In this document: positions 31,901 through 60,875 of the stretch, piece after piece
Layout: every line of letters starts with the position of its first letter
Numbering within the stretch: position 1 is the first letter of the stretch
Assembly: GCA_047495785.1 (NCBI GenBank)
Contig: JBLDXI010000019.1
Coordinates: 310,001-374,000 of the forward strand
DNA: 64,000 bases
Reading direction: 5' to 3'
Source of the DNA: Lepidodermella squamata
Lineage: Eukaryota > Animalia > Gastrotricha
Made by a program: the position numbers and the translations under genes
The notes under the pieces: model-generated
What the model was told of the DNA's origin: nothing
What the model saw: the letters and a program-made list of their open reading frames with translations, nothing else
Databases searched by the model: none

Positions 31901-33216
31901 TATAACTCTGGTATAAACTTAAAAAATTGATACACGTAAGGATTCATGATGTGGGCCATAGGCTTTTTGTCATCCTCTTGTTGGCAGATTTGTTGGCATT
32001 TGGATCCACATTTGGAATTCCCTGAGTAAAACGGTCGCGAACAGAAACAACGAGAAATTCAAATTTCGCACCGTTTCTTCCTTCTACATCTTCAGCTGAA
32101 TCCATTCCTATAAGTGACACCAGCTTTTCCGAATCGTTGGGAAACACCAGACCCAGAAAGAAAGCTGCGTGCTCAATGTGAAATTCGTCAGCATTTCATC
32201 AAGTTGAGAATAACATTAAGGTTTGCTTCTCCTAAAAATCGCACGGGGGATTTTGTTACCACTTTTTCGCCTCGGCTGTCAACCATCGAGCTCTTATTAG
32301 GTAAATTTACCGCACTCTAGACCCTAGACCTCTCGATTGCTGGAAATCGCAGCACTAAATTCCTTCTAGAGATTTTCGCCACAATTTTTCCTTCTCAATC
32401 TTTGCTGACTTATTGGTCTCTCACGACAACGGAAGCAAGGAATAACATTGTGACGCGAAAACCAGTCAGTATTTGGGCTGTAAATGTTAATGTAAATGTT
32501 AAATCTCAGTAAGAGCAGTATAATGCGCTTAGTTGAGCAAAAAATGGCGCGGGCTGATTTTTTGGAATAAAGTTCCATACACCATACAGATGAGTAACTT
32601 GTTACAAACGTCGTATGGCACGTCAAATGCAATAACGTGAAATGAAATCTTGAAGCGTGACCAAATTTCCTTAAAAGTGTAATAAACCGCTCACAAATGA
32701 GTCACACCCGGTCGCTGTAATATTCAACTTCCTATATCTATGAAAGGTTATAAAAAGAGCACAAAAAGCCAGAATGTCTTATTTTTCCATCCTCCCCGAT
32801 GGTGAATAAGACATATTACACTAAGACATACAGAGTTTAGCAAAACCAATAACAATATATCCCAATCTGTGTTCCGCATCTCATGGACGTGTACAATATG
32901 AAATCGATCGATGCAAGCGCGCGTGGTACTGTAACGCTTGAACCTTGGTCTAATTGAACTTTTCATAAACTCAAGGTTAGAAAGTTTTCTGCTGGTATCT
33001 TACTATCTGTGGTTGGAAACTCGTCTCAAATCTTTCATTACCACATGTATAATAATAACAGTAGAAACAAATAGACCTTATATCTTATAATTCTTTCTCA
33101 AATCTTTGTGTTGAAGTACAAGCAGTTGGGAACTAATTTGGGAAGTGTTTCTGTGTAACATTAGTTAACATTTCAAATATTTTCAAATCACATGTTTCCT
33201 CAAACCATGTAGGAAA

Positions 33217-33359
33217 ATGCATACAGCCTTAAATAGAAGCTCAAATGGAGAATCAAACATAACTGACCACCCGCCGATCTATTTTCAAGCAGTTCCACGT
33301 GTGCATAATTTTTCAACTGCTAATGGATTTAGGCCCGTTTATCCAAGGACGGTGGATAT
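33217..33359 (+). pseudogene. 5' part of a CD225/dispanin-like gene split by the 18.7-kb transposon
   Basis: MHTALNRSSNGESNITDHPPIYFQAV...YPRTVD(at|t)IAMQRY rejoins in frame with 52091-52655 once the element and one ATAT are removed. Confidence 0.9.
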
Positions 33360-33590
33360 CGTCGGCGCCGTGCAGTAATGTAGCTTAACCATGATATACG
33401 CACATTGGAAAATAAATTTTCTTATTTTGACGAATTTTGCCTCGAAACCGGTGTCATACTGACCGCCTTGATGCGATGAGCAAGAATATATATAATTCGA
33501 AGCACTTCGAGCGTTCAGTGCCACGTTAAAGCTGTTTGAGCGGTTTTTCAGTCGGCGTACTATTATTATTATTAGTGTGCGCATATGTAT
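33360..33590 (+). repeat. Left terminal inverted repeat
   Basis: Reverse complement of about 51855-52086; first mismatch at 33429. Confidence 0.95.
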
Positions 33591-34001
33591 GTTGTTGTGC
33601 ATGATGCGCTTATTAAAGCATGGGCGGGCAGGCGACATAACTTTTATGGAAATTCGTTGTTATTTTGCGTTGCATTGTGCGTAACAGGTAGCTCCGATAA
33701 CTACAAATTTATTGAGACTTGACGTAAAATACGAGAAGAATAATAAAATTCCCCTGAAAATGTTGTTCTCAAGTGCCTGCTATCTAAGATTTTCTTCACC
33801 GTTTATCATCGTTGACCAGAAGCCGCTCAAAGACACAACAACAACAACGCATTTAATGAATGCATGTTTTCATTAAAACACAACAAATAATTTATTTCAA
33901 TTTCTGCACAATAATAATAATAATAATATAATTGAAACCATTAAAACAAGAGGTAAAACTATATATTATATATAATACGAGGATAACACCAATACCAAAA
34001 T

Positions 34002-36615
34002 TCAAAGCCTGTCGACAAGCTCTTCTTCGTCTGCCATATCCACGTCATCGGCTGTCCATTCGTTGTCTTTATATTTTTCTCGAATCAGGGCTAGCCGATT
34101 TTCATATGCCCGGCGTTTCTCCTCTGAAGAAATGTCACATGGTAGAGCCTTGAAGTAATCAAGCATTCGCGGTGGAATAACACCATCCGCAATCCAAGAC
34201 AGCAAATCCATCTTTTTATCAAACGTGAGGTTTCGCGGCCCAGTGTACACTTTTTCAGGTTCAGCTGTCATGATAAAATAACAAATAAAATAACGAGCAG
34301 AGAAGGCAAGTTATTATTATCTACCTACCGTTATCATAACCAAATGGACCTTTATTCTTCACAGGAGTGAGGTGTACATCAAAACGTATCTTTTCGTCCT
34401 CATCCTTGTCTGTCAGCATTCGCTGGTCTGGAGTTAGCGGGCCTGTGCCATCTGTAGCTATATCGACATAGCTTTTTCTGGCCCACAGTTCATGCTCTCC
34501 GATTTTAATCTTGAACCGATAAAATTGATATTCGGTAATGCGAAATTTGCTGCTGTTTTGTAGAGTTGTCCAATAATTGGGCTTTCGGCGAAAATCAGAG
34601 AAGAAACTCCAGTCAAGTTCCACGACTTGAAATTTCTCCTTTTCATTTCCTTGTCGAGCACTTTTGATAATTTCGCGCCACTCAGCAGGGTCGGTAACGG
34701 AGCCAAATCTTCTCTGGGACTTTTCTATGCAGCTATGCATTGCGTCGACTGTCATTGTAGTGTGTCCTGAAACGCCATAAATAGTTCAAAATTGTCGGTA
34801 GTTTCCCATCGACTAAAAACATACCAGGAACTAGAAAGAGCCAATCAACAAAGCGTAGCCTTTCCTTGCCTTGTTGAACACGCTCGAAGTTGACTTTTCT
34901 GAGCGTATGATAAATTGCGTTGGGAATGAAGCTAAACAATAAAAATCTGATTAATGATACAAAAAAATCTTCATCAATAATTAAACTAACCGATTCTTTC
35001 CAGCTCCAACTGTCGAATCGGAGACAATTGTCAATTCCACAATATCGTCAGCGAGATGCTTCTTAATATAATCGTGCAGAATAGACCCAATTTCAGCGGC
35101 ACCCAGAGATCCTGAAAAGATAAAAGTTGGCCAGTTTCAAGACAAAAAGAATTATTTTTTCCAACAAATTTCTACCATTAAATTCTTCAAACAAGTAATT
35201 GAATGTGGTCCGCTCAGTGAGGTCAAAAATCGTAAAATTGGTTGTTATCAGCTTCCGCTTGTAGGGAAAAGCGCAGCAAGGAGTGCGCAATTTTGACTGA
35301 GCATCAACCTTGAATGAAACGATGTTCATAAATCAAGAATTGTCAAATTAAAGCATCACCTCAATTATTGCGCTTTTCCGTCCAGCAAAACCTGGCTGCC
35401 TTGATGCTTCCGCTCTTTCACGCCGCAAACGCCGAAATTCTCGGCTTGCGTCCTTTTCATTGAGATGCTGCTGGTGCTTGGCACGATTACGATTTTTTTG
35501 CGCATCCGTCATGTTATTCCACCGTGCGCATACCTAAGAAAATGAAATATAAAATCGAGAAAGCAGAAATTTGTGCAAAATCTTTTCATTACTTTGCACT
35601 TGTCATTTCTGGGTTGTTGGAACGAGACAGATCTGTATATTATAATAATGCAAATGATGCTTTCAGAAAACGGCGGCAAGTTGCATATATTATGCACTCA
35701 CCTGAAATGGGTACGGAATAGCGTTCGGAATGACTCAAAATTGCATCGGCGAACGCCAAGCTGAGGTGCAGACCGTATGTTAGCCACCCAGTCGCTGTAG
35801 AGACTTCCAATTGTAATGCTTGTTGATACGTAAAATCTCTTTGAAATTTTTCTTCGATAATGGCTTAGTTTTCTGTATTATATTTATGAAAAAAATAACC
35901 AATCATTTACATTTTCATAATAGAACTTGCCAGAAACTTACGCTTTTAAGCGCGGTTTCACAAAATTGATAACAGAATTTCTCGTCAACTCGTTCAAGGT
36001 ATTTCTGCCCCCTTCTTTCTTCGCACGCCGAAAGTCCGGATAAACAGTCAACTGGTCGGGACTAAGCTTGTTCTCCAAAGTGTAAGACACAAAGCGATTC
36101 GTAACATCCAAGGCAGACTCGAAAAACCTGCGACAAACAGTAATCCGCTGAATTTTTGCCGCTTTCCCTCGGAATTTCTCCGTAGCATAAATTGCAGGTA
36201 GTGTGTAGGTAATTCTACTTCGAAACTTGACAAAATCCTTTGAGACAAATCTCCCAACAAACTGACGTTGGTCAAAGATGGACCCAGTCGACCTAAACTG
36301 TTGACTCAGTTCTGCTATTTTCACGTCCGTGTATTTTTCCCAACATCGCTTTTCTTTGCAGCAGTTCAACAGCCGCTTGCCCTCGCGTTTCCGAACGACA
36401 GATAACTTTCGTTTCTTTCGCAGCTCGCCAGTATCTCGGTCTTTAGCAACAATTTCCCTCCTCACGTATGATTCTCCAGAATTTCTCATTCGCTTCTCCT
36501 CATCGACCCAAGCTGTTTTTACTCGCCGAATCGGTTTCTTTAATTTATCATTGGGAAACACGGGGATTTCCAAATCAGCGACCTTAGTCGCAGCCGATGT
36601 TGATGGAAGGCTCAT
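34002..36615 (-). CDS. Sola1-type DDD transposase (multi-exon)
   Basis: Spliced motifs: VCRRFFESALDV; LSHYRRK..FYV...SLYSDW; SFQQPRNDKC; VDAQSKLRTP..YKRKL..NFTIFDL..NYLFEE; EIGSILHDY; TIVSDSTVGAGKNR; FLVPGHTTMTVDAMHSCIEK..PAEWREIIKSAR; KKMDLL..IP..YFKALP. All three candidate catalytic Asp residues are present. Confidence 0.85.
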
Positions 36616-36745
36616 AATAATCAGTTAAATCGCCAATATTTTAAGGTTTTTGCTACAGCATTTGAAATAACCAAGATGTATCATTAAATGAATCGAATGA
36701 TCAAGAAATATTATGCAGATATGAGCAGAATAATTTAAAAAAATT

Positions 36746-37096
36746 CTACAAGCTATCTTCAGGTAGCTCGATTGTGTCAATTATACGCCCGTCAAGTCGG
36801 TATATGTGCAGCCGTTCCAAACCTCGCCGACTTCGGCTAATTACATTTTGGAGCCAGCGTATCACCTTCTGGAACTTGAATCCCAGAATAGCGACACCAA
36901 CAATGGCGATGACCGATAGGACAACTGAAACTATAATCAAAACGTCAGTTTTCGGCGTATCGCTAGCGTGCGTGGTGGAAGTAGTAATGGAGGTGCCTGT
37001 CGTAGAAGTCGTGTCGCAGAATACACAACTGCTGGCACTTAATTCAAGGCGGCATTTTATTACAGCATCCTCGCTAAACGGGACACAATCGGCCAT
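36746..37096 (-). CDS. Small single-pass membrane protein (Cys motif, Thr stalk, TM, basic tail); cargo family member 1
   Basis: 116 aa; C-x10-CRL-x6-CxxC, Thr-rich stalk, ~23-aa TM, RSRR, YRL. Confidence 0.7.
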   Translation of the reverse strand: MADCVPFSEDAVIKCRLELSASSCVFCDTTSTTGTSITTSTTHASDTPKTDVLIIVSVVLSVIAIVGVAILGFKFQKVIRWLQNVISRSRRGLERLHIYRLDGRIIDTIELPEDSL

Positions 37097-37295
37097 AATA
37101 ATAATTTTTTAATTTCTAAAAGGAAACAGGCAGGAATTTTATCGATAGATCATTTAATACCGAATGAAATAATAAAATTAACATTATATACTGCGGCAAA
37201 TAACATGGCAAGTAATATGGCAAGATTATAATATTATGGCAATACTTTATTATATGGCAAGATACAAGATACAAAGTAATAAACTAAGAATAATA

Positions 37296-37634
37296 TTATG
37301 CCGTAACTTCGGCATTCCCCTCGGCATTCCCCTCGGCCTCTTCGTTAGAGGCGAACAAGCAAAGCGGAAGGCTTTGCTCAAGCCGAGAATAACGCCTTCG
37401 ACGGCGAATATATACGACAGAAATGATAACAACGATAACAATGATAACAATGATAATGATCCCCGCTGAGATCAGACCAATTTCCAGCTTAGACAATCCC
37501 GTCTCAGCTGGAGAAGGCGGCAAGGGGTTTGAGGTTGTAACCGAGCTCGTTGTTGATGGCGGACATATGTTGCAGTCGACATGCAACAATCGACATCGCT
37601 CATAGGCTTCAGCGGACGGTGGAATGCAAGTCAT
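37296..37634 (-). CDS. Small single-pass membrane protein; cargo family member 2
   Basis: 112 aa; C-x10-CRL..CxxC, Ser/Thr/Pro stalk, Ile/Val TM, RRRRRYSRL, LCLFASNE. Confidence 0.75.
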   Translation of the reverse strand: MTCIPPSAEAYERCRLLHVDCNICPPSTTSSVTTSNPLPPSPAETGLSKLEIGLISAGIIIIVIIVIVVIISVVYIRRRRRYSRLEQSLPLCLFASNEEAEGNAEGNAEVTA

Positions 37635-38557
37635 TTAATAAAAATTGAACACTAAAATTTAATAAATGCAATTATTTAACACAAATTTGATTCGATTCGA
37701 TAAATTTAAATATGCAAGCAATTTCAATTTTTCGTAAATCACGATCACTCAGTCCATTCGATTTTCTAGTCCCTCGCATTCTCCAAGTGCACACTTTTCG
37801 GCCCTTACATTTTTCTATAGAAGCTATTTTTCTATAAATTCTTAAGCTCCAAATTGAGCTGGGTTCCGTCCGCTATTTCAATCTTTGAGAAGTGTATGCG
37901 TATTCACGGCCGTTGTTCTCGCATGTTATAAATCAACTGCGCGAACTTATTCCATTTTCAAAAATGCGGAAACAATTCTACCATCAAAATTGCATACAAA
38001 AGCATATCCAGACCTGTGATGCTTGTCACATGGAATCGATTTTTCGTTTAGAGAATCGAAACCTTGGCAAACTCCTGGCAAGCTGAACTACTGAACTTCT
38101 CGTAGCCGGACGAAAAGGACGAAGCTGACGCGTAATATGCAGACGCGTTTTGGACGAAGCTACTGACTGGACTACTAAAAATTCCGAAGTCCGGCCGAAG
38201 TCAGGACTTGGAATAGTCTGGCCTGGTTCTCCACATGACAGTTGTCATGAAACGCGACAGTTGTCGAAGCAGTTGAGGAATTCAAGCGGGGCTTTATAAG
38301 CGCAAAGAAAAGACGTTTTCTCCACATCAGCCGCTAATGTTTTCGCGCATCACTGGCCCCGGTGAAGAAATCTGAAAATTGGGCACAAATCCTGTAGTAT
38401 ATCGGATTGCGGAAATGTCTCCGATTGGCCATGGAAATTCCGTTTATCTAACACATCGAGTACATCTGAGTTTCTGAATTCGATTATACCGACTAATTTT
38501 TTTTTCTTTTCCAACACAATGAGGAAGACTAAATCAGACTAATACTGATACAAAAAC

Positions 38558-38790
38558 CAAGCTCGCCTTTTACGGCATGTGTGACTATCAGTCAGACTTG
38601 AACAGGAACTCTCTTCTTGATTCGATGAAGCGTGGTGATTGAACCCAAGCTCGCATTTTACGCTCTCTGTGACTATCAATTTGACTAGAACAGGAACTCC
38701 CTTCTTGATTCGATGAAGCGCGGTGATTGCACCCAAGCTCGCATTTTACGCTCTGTGCGATTTTCAATTTGACTAGTAGAACAGGAACTC
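38558..38790. repeat. Tandem repeat, ~88-bp unit, about 2.7 copies
   Basis: CAAGCTCGC recurs at about 38558, 38646 and 38734 with conserved GAACAGGAACTC..TTCTTGATTCGATGAAGCG. Confidence 0.85.
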
Positions 38791-38899
38791 CCAGGAGTTG
38801 AACATGACTTGAACATGAACTTCGTGATTTCATGCTCATGATTTCGATAAAAACGAGAGAGAGAGAGAGATTTCATCTCTGTTGACTCAGGTAACCAAA

Positions 38900-39173
38900 G
38901 TTTACAATTGCAGGGGAAGTAGCAGTGGAAGTTGAAACGACAAAAACGACCAATAGATTTTTCGTCAGTTTTCGGCGTATCGGCAGCGGGTGTGGTGGGT
39001 GTTGTGGTAGAAACCAGGCTAGAAGTCAGGCTAGGCGAGGTTACTGCGCCGGACGTGGTGGAAACACCAGGCTCTGTGATGGGAGTCGCCCCATTGCAGA
39101 AATTATCACAGTTGTCTCACAATTCAAGGCGGCATTTTACCAGGTCGTCAAAACTAAATGACACGCAAGGCAT
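38900..39173 (-). pseudogene. Disrupted cargo family member 3 (paralog of 36746-37096)
   Basis: MPCVSFSFDDLVKCRLEL*DNCDNFC...TTPTTPAADTPKTD; in-frame TGA and loss of frame before the TM segment. Confidence 0.7.
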
Positions 39174-39390
39174 TTGAGAATGTAATACGAGATTGGATGT
39201 AATATCTAAAAAAACGAAAATAATTCAATTATTTATGGTTTAATAATATTTATAATAATATTTCAATAATATATATCATTTTTTGCACGAATTAAGGAAC
39301 AATCAATTCTTCGAAAAATTATTGTTAAGTTACAGGCAAGTAACAGGCAAGGCCATAAAAAACTAGGTAAAAACAAAGTCGATGTTTTGA

Positions 39391-39729
39391 TCAGGCTGTT
39401 ACAGCATTCTCATCGGCAGCGCCTTGTTCGTTCGACGCGAACAAGCACAATTGAATTGTAGATTGATGATGTTGATCGATAGGGGCATAACGACGCCTGC
39501 GCCGACAAATGACGATTACAGCCCCTGTCGCGGCCACGACTGCTAACAAAAGCACTACCCCCCCGCATATTAGACCAATCAACATCGGGGTTGAAAGGCC
39601 AGGCGGCACATTGTTGGCTGGCGACGTTGTCGGGTTAAAGGCGGGGCATAGACCCGAACAATCGAGATTGAATAAACGGCAACGTTCAATCTCCTCAATC
39701 GTTGCCTCCCGACAAGTCGTTGTGGCCAT
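39391..39729 (-). CDS. Small single-pass membrane protein; cargo family member 4
   Basis: MATTTCREATIEEIERCRLFNLDCSGLCP..., TM, CRRRRRYAPI, LCLFASNE..VTA; paralog of 37296-37634. Confidence 0.75.
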   Translation of the reverse strand: MATTTCREATIEEIERCRLFNLDCSGLCPAFNPTTSPANNVPPGLSTPMLIGLICGGVVLLLAVVAATGAVIVICRRRRRYAPIDQHHQSTIQLCLFASNEQGAADENAVTA

Positions 39730-40272
39730 AAATATTCTCAAAAAATTAATCGACTAAAGTTAGAATAAATTTAAATAGCTGAAATGCACATCACACTTTT
39801 TAACGGAGTTGTTTAACGGTTTAATTGTTGGTTAATGTGCGGAAAACGGAGAAATAAACAAAGAAGCAATAAGAAATATAAGAAAACTTTTATAAAAAAT
39901 ACTTTCTAGCTTATACAATATTATTTTATTGTGAGATGAGATCGGTATAATATTTATAATATACAGTGAAAGTTGTCTAAACCGGAAGTTTTTGAGTCCA
40001 AAAGTGTGGACTTCATTCTCAACCGGTCTGGTGGTATAAACCTGACGGAGTTTGGGAGTCTGGAATTCGCAACCCGAGCGACCCGAGCGGCCCGAGCGCG
40101 GCCCGAGCGCGACCCGAGTCCGATTTAGACGACTTGCACTGTAGTTGTTTTCGGTTTTATAGGTAACGCAAGAACATTGAGAAAGTCCAAAGATTGCATG
40201 CAAAAAATATTGCGGGACCTTCATCATAATGGCATTATAAATCATATTCATGTGAGATTATAATAATGTTCG

Positions 40273-41774
40273 TCATTGCACATCATTTGCCTGGGCGGAC
40301 GGCTGGGCTTCCTGTCTAACTACATATAAATTAACTCCGGTTAGAAATGCCATAAATTGACGAAGATGGGTTATCCTAGCAACTACGGTTGCCATATTAG
40401 CGGTAGCAAAATTGCGCAAGGCAGTTAGCTGTTCAGCGGTATATTGTATACTTTGATACTCAAATTCTGCTTCAGAAATATAAGGAAAAGCAATGAGTCT
40501 GGTAGGCGGCGTATCTATTCTGCCTTCTCCTGCAAGACCTACAGCTACCACGCTGGGAACTTGTTCAGTCTCTACAGCTGTAGGGGCTTTAGATTTGGGG
40601 CTAGCGCCAACTATCGCATCGTCAAGACCATTCCCAACTACGGCAACTCCAGGGCCAGTCTCCACGGATTTTTTTCCAGTTATTAGGGCTAGGCTCATAT
40701 AAATTGTATTCTTTAAGCTGGAATAAACTAAAAAGGTAAAACTTGGCACGAAAAATAACGCTGTATGTTGTGGCTTGAATGAGGTTCCGTAATATATTAA
40801 AAAAAAGCCCGTTATGATCAAAACAACGTTTATCGCCATTTTCGGCCTACTCGAGACCAAAGGACCGTTTATCCAAGAAATAACAAACGCAGAGCAAGAA
40901 CACAAAAATATTAAGGCGTATAAAATATTATGTGCATTATCAATCGTATAATTTAGGTATTCAAAAGAGGCATATGATCCAGCGATAAATGACAGCAACA
41001 CATAGGCAACAGGCCTTTTAGTATTGTACAATTGTGATATAAAATAAAACGCAGCAGCTATCCCCGCTAAACTTCCGCTCATCGAACAAAAACTATAATA
41101 AGCTAGATTCGTTTCAGTTAGCCATTTCGATGCTACAACCATTAGAACACCTGTTAGCGTGACAATGAAATTATTAAAATCAAAATAACTTTCAGCCAAT
41201 TGCAGATCGACAGTCGAATTCAAGGGGCATATAGCAATGCTGTAGTAATCAAAGGCCGACACAAGCGCCGTCTCGAAGGCATCTTTATCGTCCTCGTCTG
41301 ATGCATCAAATAAGCTTGGTAGAAATAGTGACATAATCTGAAGAATGCCGGGCGAACGACGGTTTGCAGTTACTGCACAGCATCTAGCAGCGAGCTTTTC
41401 AGAGCAATCGTTGCCAGTATAAATCTCCAATTTAGCCACATCTTGTATTGATGCTGGTATTATTCGGTACTGGCATAAAGTTTTTCATTAAATATCCAAA
41501 AGGCAAACCAAAACCTTACCTTGTTTATCCAAAATAAATAATTAAGTTGCCATAATTCCGACTTAGTTAAGCACACTTGAGAAGGGATCGGCGGCGAATA
41601 GTCTGAAAAGGAAATCTGGTATGCCCCATCCTCAACGAGGGCCCACGGCGGAACACTAATTTCTTCGAAATTTTCGCAGTTGTTGGTTGTTAAACAGAAT
41701 GCCTCAGATAGAATTGCTGAGCTCCAAATTATCGTTAGAACATTAAACTCTGCGTGAAATTTGCGGTATGCCAT
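40273..41774 (-). CDS. NEMP/TMEM194-like nuclear envelope integral membrane protein
   Basis: Signal-like N-terminus (MAYRKF..), one intron (about 41517-41470), about 5 TMs with NEMP-type motifs: YYSFCSMSGSLAG..FYFISQL, GPLVSSR..INVVL..GFFLIYYG, and ISEAEFEYQSIQYTAEQLTALRNF..VVARITHLRQFMAFLTG (compare NEMP1 LTEEEY..QGEVETRKALEELREF..VSRIQSPKRFADFVEG). Confidence 0.75.
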
Positions 41775-42147
41775 ACGATAAATAAAACTGACTAAAATGT
41801 GAGAGAAATTTAGAAAATTAAACATTTATTTCTTAGTTGTGGGTAGCTATAATTATCAAATAATAGATCACACTTGTATTTTATTATAATTGACAGTGAA
41901 TTTACATTCTTAGAAGGCGTGCAAAAAGGAAAAATGAAGATGATAACCACAAAATAATAATTAATTGGCTAGATTCGCGCACAAGAGTTAAAGGACTACT
42001 AATAAAACGCAATATTTTGCAATATCAAATATCAATATCAATTATCAATAAAAAGCCAGAGGCGGAGATTTCCTTAGGTTACCTACAACATGCTAGAGTT
42101 CCTTGCTAAAGAGTTCCTTGTTGCTGGTTAAAGTAGCAAGATCTATA

Positions 42148-43821
42148 CTATCGAAATGGCCGAAAGCGATTGATCAAAGGCTGAATAATACTTGAACGAC
42201 TTTCTTCGCTCTTAGATGACGATTCATTGTTGCCCACGTCACGTTTTTCTTCGGCAATGACACGACTGCTTTCGCTATGGACGATTCTTCTTCCAGATCG
42301 CAAGACAGACGAAGATGGATCGGAGGCTAGTCTGCTACTTGTTTCAGTAGTTTTCAAATTAACTATGGGCTCAATTTTATTAGTAGCAATAACCTCACGG
42401 TCTGAATCGTTTGTCACACCACCACCACCACCATCTTCTCTATTCATGTATTTCTCAATCATGCGCGCAACAGCCAAAAAAGATAAGATGTAAATGAGAG
42501 ATAAATACCACATCAGAGGTCGGTTAAGATATAGCTCGCTCACATATAAATAACGCAGCGATAGAGCGACAAATTGGGTTACTATGACCGTGTCATAAAT
42601 CTTTATCTCGGTTGCATAGCTTGTTACAACTAATTCCAAGGCACCGCAGACCGCCAGTAGCATTAGTTGCATTAGTAGCCTGTTTCGCATAGAATCTGAT
42701 CCCGAGTAGTAATATTGGTATAATAGATACAAAGCTACCACGATGTAGAAATAGCACTGATAGGCTGAAAAATTCGGACTTCTGATGATAAAAATTGAAA
42801 TCTAAGACAATTAAAGTCAAAATTATGATCATCGTTTGCCAGAAACGTACCTGAGCTAAAACTTCCCGGACCAGGGTGGATTTTTTCGCAAAATATTCAA
42901 GCGTGGATTGAATAGGGGTATAAGCCAGAGAAATGGCCCTGACTAAACTTGGTATCCAGTTTGTGAACATTTCTCTCACCGGAACGGAAACACTGAGATC
43001 CCATAGCGTTTGAGTAAGCCACACCTTCGAATAGCTACGCAGCATGCAGCTTGTGTCCTCAGCGAAGTCGATAAAGTAAGCTATGGATATCTGAGAATAA
43101 ATCAAATGAGCAAACTGCTCTGGAAAAATGCTTATTACATACCAATCCAGGGAGTAAGTTTCCAGTATTCTTCTCGTCAAAGGCCTTTTAATAGAAATTC
43201 ATCAAATTGAAAGATTAAGCAATTAAATAACCTTCATACAAGCCAAAATATCAGCTCCCTCTTTGCAGGCAGTTTCATAAGAGGGATTGATACATACAAG
43301 AATCCGGAAAGTGTAGGATTTCTAACAATAAAATTCACTTGAGTTAACTCATGTTCACAGAATAATTTGCTCACCAAATCATCTGCAGTGAGAGGAAATG
43401 TTTTTTTGACAACCTCCTTCATATCTTTGATGATCTGAGTCATGAAAACGAACCCAATGATGTTTAAGTCAGGTTAAAGGGCTCACCTTATCTCCACAGT
43501 CTCGTTTATCTTTGCCCGTTTTTACAGCCATAAGTTTTCCAAGATAGTAATGCCCCTCTTTAGAGAAAAACATGTTTTTTAGCGATCAATGTTCGAAAAT
43601 GAATCCAAATACTTACCCCAAATGTAAGCTACTGTCTCACACTCGGTATTTACTGGCCCGGTAAAAAACCCATCCGTCACATTTTCCCAGTCGATATCTG
43701 GCGCATCAGCAAGAGGGTTCTCCAAAACAGGAGATAGTTTCACCGTGCGTTTTTCAATTTTTCCATTGACATGAGCATAGATGGCGATAATTGTTATCAG
43801 ATAATATGTCGTAGCATTCAT
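42148..43821 (-). CDS. Brambleberry/GEX1/Kar5-like nuclear membrane fusion protein (multi-exon, shortened)
   Basis: Signal peptide. Splicing out ~50-bp introns (e.g. 43374-43322, 43231-43185, 43142-43091) gives KRDCGDKIIKDMKE..LTADDLKSYTFRILVCINPSYETACKEGADILACMKAFD..ISIAYFIDFAEDTSCMLRS (Cys-rich domain), then TMs YFYIVVALYLL..RNRLLMQLMLLAVCGALE and a Ser/Arg-rich tail. Confidence 0.6.
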
Positions 43822-44034
43822 TTTGCAACAAGGAGTCGAAAAAATGAACGCAAGACGAAGCGCGCCAAAAGTGGATGATTGACAAAGGAAGCTTTTGTTC
43901 TGTCAAGGCCCTTATTAGAGAATAAAAATCTGGTAAAATGTAATTTTACATTCATAACTTGAAAGATTTTGATATTCATTTTGAAAGAGAAATTATAAAC
44001 TTCAAGATTAAAAAGCTTCTAAAAATGAATTGAT

Positions 44035-44300
44035 CCCTCGACAAGCTCACCATCTCAGCTTTCGATTTCGTGCTGCTAGCAAGTGGAATGACTTACCGCC
44101 ATCGATAAGATCTTCCGAAAACCCGAAGATCCTCAGAGATGAACTCCTGAAAGTATTACTGAAAGCAGAATACGTGGACGATTTCGTCTACACAAAGAAG
44201 AGGTAACTCGCCACCTTACCTCGACGCGCCCATCTGCGTCCGTTGGATGGAAGACCGCCTTAGTGCGAATCCAACGTACATACATACATACATACATACA
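44035..44300 (+). mobile_element. 3' end of a CR1/L2-like LINE with (TACA)n tail
   Basis: SFRFRAASKWNDLPPSIRSS ORF2 C-terminal motif, 3' UTR and TACA repeats; second copy at 49402. Confidence 0.75.
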
Positions 44301-44302
44301 TG

Positions 44303-44530
44303 ATGGGTCGAAGTTCAACTACTGCGACGCCGTCATCGATCAAGGTTGCAAGACCCAGCTGGATCGTCTTCAACACGCGCAAAACGAAGCCGTTCGTGCC
44401 GTTCTCGACGTCAGTCCTGATGAAGTTCTCCTGCGATTGCGATGGGTGAATGTGCCAGGCAAACGACTGGTCCACCCGGCTAAAACCATGTGGACGTGCA
44501 GCAGGGATCCTGAGACCCCGAGGCACGAGG
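44303..44530 (+). mobile_element. LINE ORF2 C-terminal fragment
   Basis: FNYCDAVIDQG..LDRLQHAQNEAVR..LRW..GKRLVH, homologous to LNYCDTVLDQA..VQNRVMR..LGW..GKRKVH in the 58-kb LINE. Confidence 0.75.
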
Positions 44531-44899
44531 CACCCTCGTCGCTAGTCAAGCCGATGATAATACACTTTATTTTCTTATAGTTCTGGAAGTATAGTAGTGT
44601 CTTATAGTTCCGGCGTTAAATAATACTCTATTTTTGGCTCCGTGGAATTACCTCATGTAAATATTCTCTACTTTTGTAAATCATTCTCCAAATAAGTCTT
44701 CTGGTAGCTTTCTTGCTACGACGGCGTTTGTAGGCTTCGCTGAGTGAGTGGAAAAGCCACTGATTATAGGCTGTTGTGGCGCCCTCCAACTTTCCTGATT
44801 TTGTTGCTGATTTTTTTGCTAATGCTTTTTGCGCACGGCTTCTTTGCGCCTGTCACATCTTCTTAGTTTCTAGGGATGATTAATACTACTTAAATCGAA

Positions 44900-45705
44900 A
44901 TGCATGTAATCCAAGTAAAATTTGCTGCTGGTGCTTCAATTCTAGCTGCTAAGAAGTATATACAAGATAATTATCCAGAACTTCAATTCACCTATTCCAG
45001 AAAACTTGGTGAGAATCAGGACATGTGATATATCCGATTAATTATAATAAGTCTTTTTCAGGTTCTGGAAGACGTTCTTTTTATTTTCGCTGTAGGGGGT
45101 ATGGGAGGTTCTTAGCCGAAACAACGAGTGAGAAGTGTCGATCTACGGCCTTATTGACGATTTATGATAACGGAGAAATGATATTCCAACGCTCTGCTAA
45201 TAGCCATCCAACTCATCCATTACCATACCAAATCTCTCGAATGTCAGTTGGCAGTAAGGCGTTTATAGAAGAAAACTTCAGGCTAAAAACAGCTTCGAAA
45301 ATACACGAAGAGTTGTCAGCCATGAATGAAAACAACCCGTTCTTAACGACTCCAAGCCTTGATCGGATTCAGGATTTCATAAGGCAGCTGCTACATCGAG
45401 ACCTAGGCTCCTTCAATAGGCGCCGTCCAGCGTCATCAAACGTTCTTCAAAATTTCACCAAACGGTCATGTCGGCATTTTCCTGTATCTATCTCAAAAAA
45501 GTTGAAATATCAATGGCCTTGCGGAGCCTGTCTCTCAGATCTTAGCCACCCTAATTCGCGAAAAGAACAATTGTCTATTGAGTGCTCTTGTTGCCATATG
45601 TATTTTCACAAAACTTGTTCATTGCTGACCAATCGCGAGTTCTCGCAATTTCAGTCAATCGTAAAGCTGAAGTGGTTTTGCTGTTATTGTAACCCGAAAA
45701 CTTGA
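44900..45705 (+). CDS. WRKY/GCM1-type (MULE/FAR1-like) Zn finger plus C-terminal PHD finger protein
   Basis: Two exons. FYFRC..KC..NSHPTHP; PHD C4HC3 pattern CGAC..IECSCCHMYFHKTC..KWFCCYC. Confidence 0.7.
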
Positions 45706-46578
45706 TTATTTTTTTGCTCTACCTAAACGTTAGATTTATGCGCTGTTCCAGAGCATTCATTATTATAATATTTTAGAACAATAATTACAGTGTTGAAATT
45801 ATATAGTTATGTTATGTTAAAATTATAGTGTTGATGAAGTGTTGAGGAGAAAGTTATGAATAAATTCACTGTTTGCAGCTAGAAAGGTTCATTTTCTTGT
45901 TCGATAATGATGGGATGACTCAGACGGCTCCGTGGGAGAACTTATTTTTCGATTTGAATTTGATGTTCGCATTGCCAAAATGAATAGAACGATCAGTGCC
46001 AATATTTGAAAGATGGCACACTTTAGTGAACCGATCGACAGCTCATGTTAAGAACTTGACTTGAACAATCGCGCGGGTCATTTTCATGAGGAAAATTTGA
46101 CTTTCCCGCGCATATTATATGGCATGTTATTGCGGCATATATGGTACATCCTGTGGCAGCAAAGTCGCCGATTCTCGAATGAAAAACAATGAAAAGATCA
46201 ATTATCAAATTACCAAATCGTACTATTTATTGACTAAATATTATTCATATTCCAAATATTTGACTAAATATTCAATTTGAGCAATTTGATGTAAGGTATG
46301 AGCCAAAACAGTGTCAAGCAATAACAGGAGTAGTAAGAGTACTCTAACAACAACTAACTCGTAACTCGTAACAGCAAGAGTTTTGATTCGAAGCAGTAAC
46401 AAAAATACGAGCAAGAGTCAAAAAGATGAAAAAATATCAAATTAGGGCAGGCACGACGAAAAAGGCACGAAGGAAAAGGCAGTCACGAAGACGAAGGAAG
46501 AAGATGAAAAAGTTGTATAACAGGCGTAAGAGTTATAATCGTTGCGAAACAACTAGGCGACATATTATGATATTATTC

Positions 46579-46732
46579 ATTTGTGACGTGGCAAGCGATT
46601 TCGGCCCTATCTCTATCTTCACAGGCATTTGAAAAGGCAACAGCTGACGCATAATCATTATTGCGCAACACCCAATTTTCAAATGACTGCGAAGATAGAG
46701 ATAGGGCCGAAATCGCTTGCCACGTCTCATTT
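46579..46732. repeat. ~55-bp-arm inverted repeat (small MITE/hairpin)
   Basis: GACGTGGCAAGCGATTTCGGCCCTATCTCTATCTTC versus GAAGATAGAGATAGGGCCGAAATCGCTTGCCACGTC. Confidence 0.85.
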
Positions 46733-47134
46733 GAGCAGTTATATTTTGTAGTATTTATTTATCCGCATCACGGTAAGTAAGAGTCGAAACCGGTCAAAAA
46801 CAATAGTTTTTCAGGCGCGAGTATCAAATGATCAAGAGTTAAAACCATCGAAAAATAAGAAATAATAAGCAAACGCAGCGTTTTTTAACGCTGAAGAATG
46901 CGAAGAATGCTGAAGATTTATTAACGCAGCGAGTAAGAAGAAAAATAAGAAATAAGAAGAAGATGATCGTTCAAAAAATCGAAAATCTACAATCAAAAAT
47001 AAGATCGAGGAGCAAATCAATTTTTGAAACTGAGCAGCATGCTCAACTTTATGAATGTCGCAGCAATTTAATTGACAAATCTAATGGTTCTATGACTGAA
47101 GAGCACGCGATCTGAGAGCAAAGATCAAACCAAT

Positions 47135-49003
47135 CTAATTGCCCTCTGCGCAAGGTGGTTTAACTGTCACAGTGTTTTGACAGTTAAACCACCTTACGCA
47201 GAAGCACGCCGGGCTACAACGCCGGTTATTTTTGCGGCAGCCGCACTGGGCTAAACAGCCGGTTTTGCAGTAGCAACGAACGGCTGTAGCGTCCTGCATG
47301 TTTTTCTGGTCGGTCGGAGCAGTCGAACCAGCCGGAGCAGTCGAACCAGCCGGAGCAGTCGAACCAGCCGGAGCATGATCAGACTCTGAACCTGATAAGT
47401 CGGGTCGACATTCCGGTAAAGATGAAGTTGAAGATGATGAAGATGAAGATGGTGGCAGCGCAGCATTAGTAGGGTCTATAAAACCAATTCAGACTTTAAA
47501 ACAAAATTAACAAGCATAACAAATCGTTGATACCGTTGTTTCCAGTGAGCGAGCGAGCCGTTGGGGTAGAGAACAAATTTGTATCGACCGAAACCTCCTC
47601 TCCTGTAAAAATATATAAATTATAAAAACAGGGTGTAAAATATTGTTAACTAACCAGGCGTTAGATGGAAATTGGGCGGATGTAACTGAGCATGTAACTG
47701 AGCCAGCCGCTGCTGCTCAGCGGTAATCGCATTTTCGATGGCATGTAGAAGGCCCATCGCCTCGGCAACTTGCGCCTCTGCAGCAGCGACCCGTGCTTCG
47801 GCAGCCGCAGCTCGCGCATTGGCAACCTCCGCACGGGCCTCTGCCGCGCGAGCGTAATGTACAGCTTCATGCGTAGCCGCCTCTTGGCGGGCACGCTGTT
47901 CTTCCGCCATGTGAAAGAGCCGCATGGCATTAGCGGCGCGGAGTTCAGCGGCATTCGCATCGGCATCGCAGACCCGAGCATGCTTCACGGGGACACGAGG
48001 AGTTGGCCCAATCTCAGAAGATCCTAGGTAAAACAATGTTAGCCAAATGAAATGTGTGATAATCAAATCAAAACCTGGCACTTGAGGATGATCAGGCTCC
48101 TTAAATTCGCAAGATTCTGCAAAAACGAATAATCATGATAATTACGATTTCGGGTTTCAGCTTTTACCAATGTTTTCATCCGGTGAGCTGGCACCAGCAA
48201 CAGATTGCCCAGCATCTTTTAAGTCTTTCAGGTGAGCGAACGCACGCCGAAACGGCGTTGCTACACTATCAAGCAACGGCGAAACCGCGCCGCGAATCGT
48301 TTCTAGAGTTGAAAAAAATATTACAAGAATCTAGCAACTAAAACAAACAAACCAATGTCAACGCTAACAAAGGCGCGCTCTCGGAGGCAGCCTGAAGTAG
48401 AAAGCATGAATAAAAAAAAATAAGCAAATTAATTACAGCTTACCGACGATTCGAGCACGTAGAGCTCTGGTTTTTGTAAATATGTACAGGCAACAGCAGC
48501 AAATTACGATAGCGCCGGTTACGCTGGTGACGGCGATTATCGCTATGTAGAAATACTGATGCTCCTGAAAATACAAATAAACTCCAAATAAATACAATAC
48601 AAATAATGTAAAATCATATGTCCTACGAGGACTTTTTGCAAATGGGTGTAAAAATCGGTCACGCAGAAATTAAATTCGCTAAACAAGAAATTCATGGCTT
48701 TACAGTATTATGTAACAGATGAATGGAAAAGGCTCAATTGAAGGAAACAGTATCAAAAGTTGTTTAATGCATGATCAAGAGCATTCGAAATGGTAACAAA
48801 AATAAAAAAATGTAAATGAAACCTACAAGCGTTGTGCTGTTGGAGTTGTGCTGTTCCCTGCTGATGACCACACCGCTGATGGTCAAATCGTCTGATTGCC
48901 GCTGATGGCCGCTGATGGCCACACCGTCGTTGACCACGCCATCGTTGGCGAGAGCACGCGATCCAACGGCCGGCGGCAAAACACCACGGAAAAATTCAGC
49001 CAT
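47135..49003 (-). CDS. Multi-exon transmembrane + coiled-coil + Tesmin/TSO1-like CXC domain protein
   Basis: A chain of mostly phase-1 GT-AG introns links the TM (YFYIAIIAVTSVTGAIVICCCCLYIF), an Ala/Glu coiled coil, a Ser run, (AGSTAP)x3 and a C-terminal CYCKTGCLAQCGCRKNNRRCSPACFC..NCQN. The start may instead be the ATG at about 48695. Confidence 0.75.
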
Positions 49004-49401
49004 TACAACAAAAGTACAAAAGTACAAAAGTACAAAAGTACAAAAATCAAATGAAAAACCTATGCAATAAAAGCCATATTGTTGGAAAAATAACTTATTT
49101 TAACCAATAGAAAATTTCAGATTATTCAGATTTCAGACTACAAAGACTTTTCCACGCAAGTATGCTTCGCAAGATCAAGTTGATGAAAGTGAAAGAAGGC
49201 AAGCTTGCTAGCACGTTTTTTTTTGCTCGGCGATCGGTCGTGCTAGGCTGGCCGTCGGCGTGCTAGGCTGTGCTTTTTTCATTATTCAATTAATTTTAGC
49301 ATTATAATATAACGTAATTAAAAAATTCTTGTTTATTTTATTTCATTTGAAAACCAAGAACGTCTTTTGGCGGGTTATTTTCAAGTTTTAGGAGTTTCGC
49401 T

Positions 49402-49571
49402 AACTCCTGAAAGTACTGCTGAAAGCAGAATACGTGGACGATTTCGTCTACACAAAGAAGAGGTAACTCGCCACCTTACCTCGACGCGCCCATCTGCGTC
49501 CGTTGGATGGAAGACCGCCTTAGTGCGAATCCAACGCTAATATACATACATACATACATACATACATACAT
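49402..49571 (+). mobile_element. Second, shorter copy of the (TACA)n-tailed LINE 3' end
   Basis: Near-identical to 44142-44300. Confidence 0.85.
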
Positions 49572-49914
49572 TTCAACAAAAAAGTCTCAGTTGACGTCGT
49601 CGAACGAAACAAAATAATAAAGAAGTCTCTCTCATTGCATTCATGCGTGGGAAATTTCATTTTCATTTTCGCCGAAGATTTGCCTCGAAATCGTTTTAAA
49701 GCTTTTATTTTGATTTAATTTGCAAGATCTGTTGTGAGACTTCGGCTTGTTCTTCACTACTTGTAGCAACTAGTAACTTGTGAACTATAACTAAATTTTC
49801 CATCTCCATCGCTTAACTTACTCGGAGAGGTTTGTCTTTAACCTCTAGATCCTGTAAAATGACCAAAAAATGACTAACCCATCAATGCATCCAAGTTCAT
49901 CCGTATGTTTAGGA

Positions 49915-50230
49915 CTGATAACAAGTTGATGCATCTGTTTTCTACTCGTAACAAGTTGACCTATTTGTTTTCTACTCGTAACAAATACTTATACTTTAAA
50001 CCATTAGTGTCCACTCGCGCGCAATGTTGAATCCTTTGAAAAGTTGTCATCACGAAGGCCCGGGAGGCTCTCTTACTGTCGAGACCAAGTCATCTTACAC
50101 TGGGCTTCTTGGAGCATCCTGTCAAGTGTTAAACTGCGACTCCAATATTTGTTTTCTACTCGTAACAAATAGGCACATCTGTTTTCTACTCGTAACAAAC
50201 TGGCCCGATTGTTTTCTACTTGTGACAAGT
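49915..50230 (+). repeat. Dispersed short direct repeats GTTTTCTACTCGTAACAA
   Basis: Five recognisable copies at about 49937, 49967, 50150, 50181 and 50211. Confidence 0.7.
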
Positions 50231-50498
50231 GGAGTTTTCAGCAAATTTCGCACAAACTTGACATCAATCAAACAACTTCCATCAAAGCCCCGCTAGTGGT
50301 TTAGGGCTGACTTCGTGATTTGGGTAACAGACAGTCAGTTGCCAGTTTTTACTGTTCAAATGAGCATCATTGCTTTGACCGTTCTCATAATTTACGTAGG
50401 ATTTCAGCTGCTAACGTTTGCTGAGTTTCTCTGTTGCCTGTTTACTGCTGAATTTAGTATGATACAAATAATTTTCTATTGAATAGTAAAGTTTAACG

Positions 50499-51094
50499 AT
50501 GATTAATCTTACTAATAGTTGGATTTTGGCGGTTTTTATGTTGGAGACGATATCGGGATCACCGCCTTGTCTTGAGCCCACTGGCAAGTTTTTTTGCCAG
50601 TTTTTGCTAGAAAAATCTTACAGCAATGATTTTACAGATGCCAATATCATATGGTGCGCCAAGTCTGGCAGTTGCAGAGTATGTCGCAGTCTCATTGAAT
50701 CGACAACAATAACAACAACAACATCAACAACTTCCACAACAGCAACAGACAAAACAAAGACCCCGCCAACAAACGCACAGACCCTGTCAGTGTCCTATCT
50801 AACGAACAGCGTGCTGAACATTTCGAAAGACTGCTCACAGATTTTACCGGTTTGTTCTGAATGTACCTGAGTTTAATCACGAAGTTTAACCATTTTTCTC
50901 TGTCCCACCAGGATAATAATATTACCGACGCTTATTCGGTCATTCTTTGGGTTCTATTTGCTCTTGTCATCTTAGCGATTTGCATCTGGCTACTCCGATG
51001 CCGCTCAAGTAAGTTAAAGTTAACGCGTTTGATTTTCAAATTGTGATTGTTTTTATTCCAACATCAAGGGTCTGGCTATATGGCAACTGACTAA
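50499..51094 (+). CDS. Type I membrane protein with Cys motif and Thr-rich stalk (cargo)
   Basis: Signal peptide MINLTNSWILAVFMLETISG, C..CAKSGSCRVC, poly-Thr, a spliced TM exon YSVILWVLFALVILAICIWLL and a short tail. Confidence 0.6.
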
Positions 51095-51854
51095 AATGTT
51101 GATTGCGGCTGGATTAATAGCCAGTGGTTGCAAATAGCTAGCAAAAAACCTATCGAAATGAGCGATGACATCAACAATCAATCAATCAATCTTCATTTTC
51201 GTAAAAAAAACCTATTTATCCACTATCTTTTTGTAATTTTGTAGTGTCTCTTTTTACGCGAAATTTCTAGTCCGAAAGTGTCTCTTTTGCATTTGCATAT
51301 TATTATTATTGTAATAAATAATTATTTGTAAGAAAAGAATCGTTTTAAACCCTGAGTTTTGTTTTATTATCGCTGAATGATAATTTTATTTTATGCAAAA
51401 ATCTTGCTATTGACACCTTTCTGAAAACGATGCAATTTTGCGACTTTGATTCTCCCTCGGCTCATAGCTGCGCATTAAAATGATGTGTTGAGTTCATTCG
51501 GCGTTGCTGCAACAGCTAGGTTCGCTTCACAACAAACTCTCCGAGGGCTAGTACATGGCAATAACTTTTAGTTATGAATTGATTGATGGGAGAAGGCGAG
51601 GTGTATAAAAGTAATGTCGTTTTTATTGCACATCGGTTGCACTTGTCAAACGGTTGTTGAGATTACGAAACATTTATTTTTATCAGCAGAAGTTATTTAT
51701 GGGCGGATTTCAGAAAAAAACTAAGACATAAATATTTTTGAGATACCCTTTGAGATACCGAACCTTAACCCCAAGCCTAAAAGATATCAAAGCATTAATA
51801 AGAAAAAAGAACAACGGCGGGAAAAGATGCTACATGCGGCCATCATATATGCAT

Positions 51855-52086
51855 ATGCATTTGCACACACACTAATAATAATAACAGTACGCGGACGAAA
51901 AACCGCTCAAACGGCTTTAACGTGGCACTGGACGCTCGAAATGCCACAAATTTGACATATTCTTGCTCATCGCATCAATGCGGTCAGTATGACACCGGTT
52001 TCCAGGCAAAATTCGTTAAAATAAGAAAATTTATTTTCCAATGTGCGTATATCATGGTTAAGCTACATTACTGCACGGCGCCGACG
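51855..52086 (-). repeat. Right terminal inverted repeat
   Basis: Ends ...CTGCACGGCGCCGACG followed by ATAT. Confidence 0.95.
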
Positions 52087-52090
52087 ATAT

Positions 52091-52655
52091 TGCTATGCAA
52101 CGTTACCCCACAGCGGCGAGAATGAGTGGTGCATTTGTTGAGCCTAGGCCTGCCCATCCGACTTACTATCAAGCAGTTCCTCGTGTGCATAATATTTCCA
52201 CGGCTAGTGGCTTCGGGCCCGTTTATCCAAGGAGGGACGAAAATGCTATGCAAAGTTACCCTCCAGCGACGGGAATGAGGGGTGCGTCCTATGCCGAGCC
52301 TAAGCCTGCCCAACCGCAGGCTATTATCATCATGGCTCCACGAGTTTCATTCGATGAATCTACCAATCGTCTCAGGAAAGCAGCATGTTGGATGGCAATC
52401 ATTTCGCTGTTCCTGGGATGTTTGCCGCTGTCGATTCCTGCTTTTATATGCTATAGCAGGAAGAACAGAAGTCTTGAAGCTACTAGCAGAAAAGCAAGGG
52501 ATACCTACAAATGCTCGATAGTGACATCATCGATATCAATTGTCCTGGGCATTTCTATCACTGCAATTATTGTATGGCTGAGAGTAGTGGTCTACTCATC
52601 TTCATCGTCGCCTGGTACCAATCCTACTTATTACAATTCAGCTTCATTTGGCTGA
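52091..52655 (+). pseudogene. 3' part of the interrupted CD225/dispanin-like gene (still an open frame from ATG 52095)
   Basis: RLRKAACWMAIISLFLGCLPLSIPAFICY...YKCSIVTSSISIVLG; contains a second copy of the ~52-aa N-terminal repeat. Confidence 0.85.
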
Positions 52656-54266: not shown

Positions 54267-54845
54267 ATGTTTACAGTCCTAAATGAGAACTCAGATAAAG
54301 GATCAGATACATCTGATCACCCGCTGTCCTTCAACCAAGTAGTTACGCATAGTGAAGAAGGCGCTGGGTCTGCAAATACAACTGTTCCCCCGCCGTCATC
54401 CCATGCTGACGTCGCTGGTTTTGCCGATCCAAGGAAGGAAAATATTGGTATGCAAAGCTACGTGCCAGCGCCTAGAATGAACGGTGCAGCTGCACAAGTT
54501 GTGACCTCTCAACCGCAGGCAATCGTCATCATGGCTCGACGAGTTTCATCAACCGATAAATTAACCATTTGCCTAAAGAAAACTGCATATTTCATGGTAT
54601 GCATTTCGCTGTTCATTGGATGTTTGTTAATATCGGTTCCCGCCTGGGCATGCTATCGTCAAGCGAGTCGAAGTGCGCAAGCTAAGAGCAGTATGTCACG
54701 GGGTAGCTACATATGCTCGATAGTGACGTCAGTGATATCAATAGCCGTAAATATAATTATCATATGGGCAAATGTGGCATTCTCTTCACCTGACACAAAA
54801 CCTAATACTACCCGTATCAGTTTTTGGGTATCAGTATCAGGATGA
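54267..54845 (+). CDS. CD225/dispanin-like membrane protein with a MITE-altered C-terminus
   Basis: LKKTAYFMVCISLFIGCLLISVPAWACY...YICSIVTSVISIAV; paralog of the 52095 and 26675 genes. Confidence 0.75.
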   Translation: MFTVLNENSDKGSDTSDHPLSFNQVVTHSEEGAGSANTTVPPPSSHADVAGFADPRKENIGMQSYVPAPRMNGAAAQVVTSQPQAIVIMARRVSSTDKLTICLKKTAYFMVCISLFIGCLLISVPAWACYRQASRSAQAKSSMSRGSYICSIVTSVISIAVNIIIIWANVAFSSPDTKPNTTRISFWVSVSG

Positions 54846-60749: not shown

Positions 60750-60875
60750 CTCGACAATGACTTGTATCGGGAGGATACAATTTTTCGGCCGGCGTTTCCT
60801 GTTTGGCACCGAGTCGGAGCAGCTTTGTGGTTTCTTGCCACACATGGTGAAATGCGTACCGTCGGTGAATTACCG
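60750..60875 (+). pseudogene. PIF/Harbinger transposase remnant (continuation)
   Basis: LDNDLYREDTIFRPAFPVWHRVGAALWFLATHGEMRTVGEL matches Harbinger L.R.DT..R.AI....RVA.AL..LAT; the catalytic part is missing. Confidence 0.7.

Follow-up and report, generated by a model that had tools for sequence, protein, structure and literature searches.

A DNA transposon of 18,727 bp was identified in a 64,000-nt stretch of the genome of the gastrotrich Lepidodermella squamata (assembly GCA_047495785.1, contig JBLDXI010000019.1, positions 310,001-374,000 of the forward strand). This stretch is referred to below as the window, and all coordinates are counted from its first nucleotide. The element occupies 33360-52086; it was inserted as a unit, encodes an intact transposase, and has a block of other genes between its ends. 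It is probably an autonomous, recently active member of the Sola superfamily, belonging to the Sola1 group and carrying a block of passenger genes. The element may still be active at present, and its passengers may be expressed and functional.

Ends of the element and the interrupted host gene

The element was flanked by ATAT on both sides. Inverted-repeat detection returned two arms of 194 nt (33356-33549 and 51897-52090, 94% identity), a span that includes the palindromic ATAT. Self-blastn lengthened the terminal inverted repeats (TIRs) to 220 bp (33360-33579 against 52086-51868, 93% identity), and columns 1-69 of the TIR alignment were identical between the two ends. Within the window, the terminal 34-mer was confined to the two tips of the element; shuffled sequences gave an expectation of 0. 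Neither the search with this 34-mer nor self-blastn revealed an internal TIR copy or remnant within the 18.7 kb; a composite of two complete elements was ruled out by the absence of a TIR copy inside the element. Sola elements have DDD transposases (with three catalytic aspartates), target site duplications (TSDs) of 4 bp and TIRs of 11-1124 bp (PMC10741241, review of Bao et al. 2009; for the TSD also PMC3627910); ATAT on each side and TIRs of 220 bp both agree with this description.

The insertion is within a coding exon of a host gene for a repeat/transmembrane (TM) protein, a member of a local paralogue family. When 33360-52090 was deleted, such that a single ATAT was kept, one host frame of 251 codons was open again; the restored protein consisted of two repeat units of about 51 aa followed by a two-TM tail, and the repeat period was regained. 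At the empty-site junction, PVYPRTVDI was followed directly by AMQRYP, in register with PVYPRRDENAMQSYP of the next repeat unit; therefore, exactly 4 bp had been duplicated.

The empty site and recent mobility

Only three public runs held this DNA. One of these, X2, is a separate run of 2015 with another organism label, which is probably derived from RNA and may contain DNA. One of its contigs (record 9) covered 33248-33359, this match stopping precisely with the final T of ATAT. A further 78 letters stood between 33359 and the second repeat unit, while 52091-52168 is likewise 78 nt, and the loose end of the contig was identical to 52234-52263. This contig was about 98% alike to the locus, whereas the paralogues in the window (at 26.7 kb and 54.4 kb) were 70-76% identical at the DNA level; an origin from a paralogous locus was thereby ruled out, and the contig represents this locus without the insertion. 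Since the empty site matched both TIR tips to the base, the 18,727 bp was inserted as one unit, in one event and at one ATAT. Additionally, the insertion is young or polymorphic, because the site is uninterrupted in a second sample.

A first-pass annotation of the window, made by a model from the letters alone, had described TIRs of about 230 bp with an identical outer 69 bp, an ATAT TSD, an empty site restoring a host reading frame, and movement of the whole 18,727 bp as a unit. The TIRs proved slightly shorter, and the other claims agreed with the restored frame, the absence of an inner TIR and the base-exact X2 contig. The same annotation had proposed a check for an empty allele across 33359/52091, and this was the allele present in the contig of the independent run.

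Element sequence was also contained in X2, which had 33% of the words from the left kilobase and 28% of those from 36.7-46.7 kb. The combination of empty and filled alleles is that of a recently active family, seen in the empty site of X2 and in the variant contigs and raised word depth of another run, X1, where a copy number is suggested only.

The transposase

The transposase gene spanned 2,614 bp, close to the 2.6 kb of the first-pass annotation, and was assembled from minus-strand open segments between 36624 and 34005. Its nine exons (36615-35942, 35872-35702, 35632-35593, 35533-35360, 35308-35176, 35111-34991, 34931-34825, 34766-34329 and 34264-34002) were separated by eight canonical GT-AG introns of 51-69 nt, and the joined coding sequence of 2,121 nt (706 codons) was free of stops. 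Relatives were reached with the catalytic exon as query: a HMMER search with its 154 aa against 1.84 billion representatives gave 15 weak matches, leading to DUF7869 (PF25273). Over residues 26-662, the 706-aa model aligned collinearly with DUF7869 proteins, at 24-28% identity (the best being P0021, E = 4e-56, 27% identity). The closest transposase relative found was L001, a Logan contig of SRR21620664 of 2,879 bp, which aligned with residues 26-704 (34-44% identity, E = 1e-113) and lies in three or four frames on this short contig. These collinear alignments with P0021 and L001 support the splice model.

In an alignment of the transposase with 24 family proteins, the catalytic residues D355 (VDAQS), D429 (SDSTVGAGKN) and D481 (GHTTMTVDAMHS) occupied columns that were invariant in 25 of 25 sequences, as did H229, Y230, R232, G474, H475 and H484. 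Judged by its sequence, the product is an intact DDD enzyme; the three invariant aspartates and the intact frame agree with the DDD transposase of the Sola superfamily. Pfam searches of the separate exons returned nothing, including for the DUF7869 model, and neither the TIR tip nor the catalytic exon had a match in scans of metagenomes. No TIRs were found to flank P0021 (locus L003), where they had been sought to link DUF7869 with 4-bp TSDs. Many DUF7869 (Sola1-like) proteins from molluscs, beetles, sea urchins and other animals (hits P0022-P0132) have a fused OTU cysteine-protease domain (PF02338), unlike the transposase of this element, which is without it.

The transposase would bind the 220-bp TIRs, excise the whole 18,727-bp unit and insert it into an AT-rich target of 4 bp, in this case ATAT, which would be duplicated on insertion. 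The passengers that would move along comprise a family of small single-pass membrane genes (sTM), a divergent NEMP-family gene, orphan membrane and zinc-finger open reading frames (ORFs), and retroelement debris.

Probable assignment to Sola1

The transposase was compared by eye, at the level of motifs, with transposases printed in the supplements of papers. The main reference was Sola1-1_Ec32 of the brown alga Ectocarpus, which was classed by its authors through its best blastp match to Repbase Sola1-1_PPa (PMC12477816). Six motifs were, by eye, common to both transposases in the same order, including all three catalytic motifs. The N-terminal domain had VC..F, which was followed by (S/Q)H(Y/M)....YL and D.C..C. 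The first catalytic motif was MDGANQS in Sola1-1_Ec32 and VDAQS in the window, the second VDNTVAENKNNY and SDSTVGAGKN, and the third VGHTHIQIDQIFS and PGHTTMTVDAMHS, respectively; the stretch past the third aspartate was also similar to the eye. Within the Ectocarpus transposable-element protein library, ENKNN occurred in the Sola1 entry only, while GHTH occurred there and in one unrelated Gly/Pro/Gln-rich stretch. At the corresponding places, Sola2_DFa-2 and Sola2_PPa-1 have MDFKEN, WSDGAKHFKS and YHGKSDVDRHF, which by eye were clearly unlike the transposase of the window. The match with Sola1-1_Ec32, the mismatch with Sola2 and the 4-bp TSD together point to Sola1. With regard to the target, AWWT, which the first-pass annotation gave for Sola1, was found in print for Sola2 (PMC3627910) but not for Sola1, and the TSD of the Ectocarpus Sola1 is "biased towards ending in A" (PMC12477816); ATAT fits AWWT, at the one insertion site seen.

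Copies of the family

Word depth in X1 was derived from contigs and, by the warning of the tool itself, is not a copy number; it was 97 over the flank, 134-140 over the transposase core (34357-35983), 235-300 over 35954-38671, 444 for a variant contig over 33529-34379, and 940-1640, summed, over the TIR. Variant contigs in X1 showed 90-99% identity, some of them diverging at 33495 and 37059. Contigs of the passenger block had approximately 2.5-3 times the depth of the flank, and included near-identical sequences as well as 98.5% variants. These observations suggest that the family is multi-copy and has numerous derivatives that carry TIRs; the passenger DNA near the transposase seems to be more abundant than the transposase core. 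A passenger depth above that of both flank and core argues against passengers unique to this locus.

Position 33394 was C, not A, in most X1 copies. Contigs with diverged TIR tips were seen in X2 over window positions 33356-33410, for example ACATCGTTTGTGTTC for ATATCGTCGGCGCCG, the changes being mostly C to T; they suggest that older copies may have decayed at other sites.

Passenger genes and nested repeats

From the transposase gene to its right end, the element consists of roughly 15 kb of passenger DNA, which moves with it (Table 1). About eight non-transposase genes, the number given by the first-pass annotation, is a fair count of the candidates, the NEMP-like gene alone being anchored to a family. 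The same annotation took the remainder of the element to be spliced, mostly open genes; this was not fully right, for LINE (long interspersed nuclear element) fragments, a foldback, several tandem repeats and a degenerate paralogue are also there.

The genes sTM-1, sTM-2 and sTM-3 were intact and had in common a Cys motif, a stalk of Thr, Ser and Pro, a single TM segment and a basic anchor; the C-terminal tail LCLFASNE...VTA was common to sTM-2 and sTM-3. The NEMP-like ORF (40273-41439, 388 aa) matched the curated Pfam model NEMP (PF10225) over residues 79-235, with a score of 51.4 bits against a gathering cutoff of 28.7 (E = 1.5e-13). A candidate GT-AG intron of 50 nt joined the NEMP-like exons in frame, and the upstream exon had a hydrophobic N-terminal segment; a word-indexed search returned no pairwise homologue of the 388-aa ORF. 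The FLYWCH/PHD-like ORF had its best Atlas score (0.88, a lead only) to FLYWCH+PHD_Pygo clusters, and a Pfam PHD match at E = 0.16. The three segments of the CXC candidate comprised a TM segment (48436-48669), an Ala-rich coiled coil (47653-48132) and a Cys-rich, CXC-like tail ORF (47138-47488), for which there was no Pfam or family hit. Short canonical introns were tried for the CXC and multi-TM candidates and did not settle their splicing. A reading of 42148-43902 as Brambleberry/GEX1/Kar5 was not supported, there being no Pfam hit and a best Atlas score of 0.60, to unrelated NIPA transporters, when separate exons were tested.

The host DNA on either side (45 kb) contained no paralogues of the passengers, and no Rfam RNA family was found within the element. 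The nested LINE fragment was similar to a LINE ORF elsewhere in the window (58084-60843; E = 4e-14). The foldback adjoins a Lys/Arg-rich ORF (46387-46629) and could be a small nested MITE (miniature inverted-repeat transposable element).

Table 1. Features of the element and of the host exon that it interrupts (window coordinates)
Feature	Position	Strand	Description
Host exon, upstream part	about 33171-33359		
Left TSD copy, ATAT	33356..33359	.	Sequence, host-frame restoration, run X2 contig
Left TIR	33360..33579	+	220 bp; outer 69 bp identical to right TIR; terminus CGTCGGCGCC
Transposase gene	34002..36615	-	9 exons, 706 aa, without internal stop
sTM-1	36746..37096	-	116 aa; N-terminal Cys motif, Thr/Ser-rich stalk, single TM
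sTM-2	37296..37634	-	112 aa; paralogue of sTM-3
Tandem repeat	38557..38792	.	88-bp unit, 2.6 copies
Degenerate fourth sTM paralogue	38688..39224	-	Frame broken past N-terminal Cys motif; no in-frame TM after it
sTM-3	39391..39741	-	116 aa
Divergent NEMP-family membrane protein gene	40273..41825	-	Main exon 40276-41469, likely first exon 41520-41825
Multi-exon, multi-pass membrane orphan	42148..43902	-	No Pfam hit
Nested LINE-derived fragments	44012..44580	+	3' tail with terminal (TACA)n (44277-44301), followed by C-terminal piece of ORF2
FLYWCH/PHD-like ORF	45025..45705	+	226 aa; FLYWCH-like N-terminus, PHD-like C-terminus
Foldback inverted repeat	46577..46734	.	59-nt arms, 92%, 40-nt loop
CXC/coiled-coil/TM candidate gene	47138..48669	-	Three open segments
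Second LINE/SINE-like 3' tail (SINE, short interspersed nuclear element)	49402..49571	+	With (ATAC)n; 95% alike to 44142-44301
Small membrane-protein candidate	50499..51043	+	Cys/Thr-rich ORF, then TM segment
Right TIR	51868..52086	-	Self-blastn and alignment
Right TSD copy, ATAT	52087..52090	.	Sequence, host-frame restoration
Host exon, downstream part	52091..52655	+	Repeat units and C-terminal two-TM region

Alternative explanations

Several observations weigh against an autonomous Sola1 element with a passenger block. The terminus CGTCGGCGCC (CGTCGG...) had no obvious match to the AACCG of the Ectocarpus Sola1, nor to GACGTTCC or GACTGCCG (GACGTT.., GACTGC..) of bivalve Sola1; the comparison of transposases was made by eye rather than computed; no second full-length copy was seen directly, and the X1 depths do not count copies; a significant family match was absent for all passengers except NEMP; and X2 depth was zero over sTM-1 and sTM-2, while the 28% of words that X2 holds from 36.7-46.7 kb may come from DNA. 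The first two of these points would suit a real element with a transposase from a DDD clade of its own, DUF7869-like, unnamed and outside Sola1 proper, as would the identity of 24-28% to DUF7869 proteins only and the lack of a Pfam match on separate exons. Such a placement is unlikely, given six ordered motifs, three of them catalytic, that resemble a curated Sola1 and not Sola2, the Sola hallmarks of a 4-bp TSD and DDD chemistry, and the distribution of ENKNN and GHTH in the Ectocarpus library. Alternatively, a short Sola1 element could have lost or bypassed its inner end, used a distant end and mobilised a block of host DNA once, in which case the passengers would be no stable part of the family. 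This would fit the want of a directly observed full-length copy, the heterogeneity of copies implied by a lower depth over the transposase core than over the adjacent passengers, and the variant contig that diverges at 37059. A one-off event of this kind is nonetheless improbable, as there is no TIR remnant inside the 18.7 kb, the passengers and their variants reach 2.5-3 times the flank depth, suggesting that they are multi-copy, and the flanking 45 kb contains no paralogues of them. An assembly artefact, in which repeated TIRs produced a false join to an interior foreign to the ends, is barely credible: the TIR is highly repeated in X1 and none of the X1 contigs listed bridges 33359/33360, but the empty site in a separate run agrees with both TIR tips to the nucleotide, and X1 contigs tile 33529-38671 in window order.

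A different question is whether the passengers of this probable Sola1 element matter. They might be mostly non-functional, comprising chance or decaying ORFs and nested repeats in a bloated element, a view that is somewhat doubtful. It draws on the passing of a curated threshold by NEMP alone, the want of a homologue for the 388-aa ORF, Atlas scores at noise level for the multi-TM ORF, the LINE fragments, foldback, tandem repeats and broken paralogue, and the zero X2 depth over two sTM genes. Conversely, there are long open frames (388, 226, 217 and 201 codons) in DNA of 40% GC, three paralogous sTM ORFs have kept their Cys motif, TM segment and basic anchor, a canonical 50-nt intron connects the NEMP-like exons in frame, and X2 holds more than a quarter of the words of 36.7-46.7 kb. 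At the other extreme, the passenger block could be a conserved functional accessory module of the Sola1 lineage, with membrane proteins (NEMP-like included) and FLYWCH/PHD and CXC zinc-finger proteins; this too is unlikely. If it were so, the module might serve the transposon, through access to the nucleus or germline or through chromatin targeting, or might instead spread a trait relevant to the host, and the element would be an animal counterpart of giant elements defined by their cargo.

The surrounding window

Paralogues of the interrupted gene were arranged in tandem locally (26732-27148, 52095-52655 and 54414-54809), with 46-49% protein identity; weaker paralogues were found at 19963-20148, 23401-23724 and 25930-26136. 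The family is characterized by proline-rich repeats of about 51 aa and a C-terminal two-TM region, and had no Pfam match. The LINE at 58084-60843 (minus strand) had an open ORF2 of 919 aa (RVT_1, E = 2e-35), the C-terminal region of which was homologous to the nested fragment at 44143-44577. Other host ORFs included Acyl_transf_3 at 14477-15676 (plus strand) and RCC1 repeats with BTB at 16909-18354 (plus strand). The host lineage seems to be poorly sampled, because the relatives found for the RCC1-BTB ORF were just 24-32% identical.

Implications and comparison with known elements

The locus presents a large cut-and-paste element with both a filled and an empty site, an intact spliced transposase and a payload of several genes. 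It indicates that Sola1 elements outside algae can bear many genes, and that transposition has moved, and possibly amplified, both the sTM family and a divergent NEMP-family gene. For annotation, the ORFs of the element should be marked as transposon-borne and not as host genes. New here are the host organism, the payload and, for a Sola1 from outside the algae, the size; Sola elements of giant size that carry passengers are already in the literature, and this one founds no new class.

Sola elements mostly measure 2-9 kb, and some are above 15 kb (PMC10741241). Among the closest counterparts is Sola1-1_Ec32 (Genome Biol 2025, PMC12477816), described in a study that treats giant Sola-1, KDZ and EnSpm elements as a class. 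Like the element in the window, a probable Sola1, it is giant and autonomous (21,549 against 18,727 bp), with long imperfect TIRs (282 against 220 bp), a 4-bp TSD, a non-transposase accessory gene and, by eye, the same ordered catalytic and N-terminal motifs. It differs in its brown-alga host, its AACCG termini, the bias of its TSD towards a final A, and its named accessory gene, a ParB-methyltransferase, where there are about eight mostly membrane-protein candidates here; its family is also represented by many fragments, with 1,989 annotated copies. The dictyostelid Sola2 elements with captured Fanzor genes (DFa-1/2/3 and PPa-1/4/5; Bao and Jurka 2013, PMC3627910) are similar in superfamily, in size (10-15 kb) and in their 4-bp AT-rich TSDs (AWWT, with ATAT among those listed), and their families have the transposase end in common while the other end has differing captured genes. 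They are unlike the element in their catalytic motifs (DFKEN, SDGAKHFKS and HGKS..D.HF), TIRs of 12-22 bp and Fanzor (TnpB-like) cargo. Bivalve Sola1 elements share the probable group and an animal host; although among the longest DDE/D transposons of their survey (mean 5,445 bp; BMC Biol 2023, PMC10294476), they are about 3.4 times shorter, have no described cargo and have GACGTT.. and GACTGC.. termini. The view of Sola1 in the first-pass annotation, as few-kb elements with a transposase only, is therefore contradicted by Sola elements above 15 kb, by the Sola2-Fanzor elements and by the 21.5-kb element of Ectocarpus.

Extra genes are carried, alongside or instead of the mobility gene, by Pack-MULEs, giant KDZ and EnSpm elements, Teratorn and Starships, all of which are comparable with the element by analogy only. 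The enzymes concerned are Mutator, KDZ and CACTA transposases, a piggyBac fused with a herpesvirus in Teratorn, and a tyrosine recombinase in Starships; in size, both Teratorn and Starships exceed the 18.7-kb element by an order of magnitude. The proposal of a giant cut-and-paste cargo element on a Sola chassis, made in the first-pass annotation, is supported as to mechanism and superfamily, while its likening to Teratorn and Starships is a loose analogy, since their enzymes are different and their sizes much greater.

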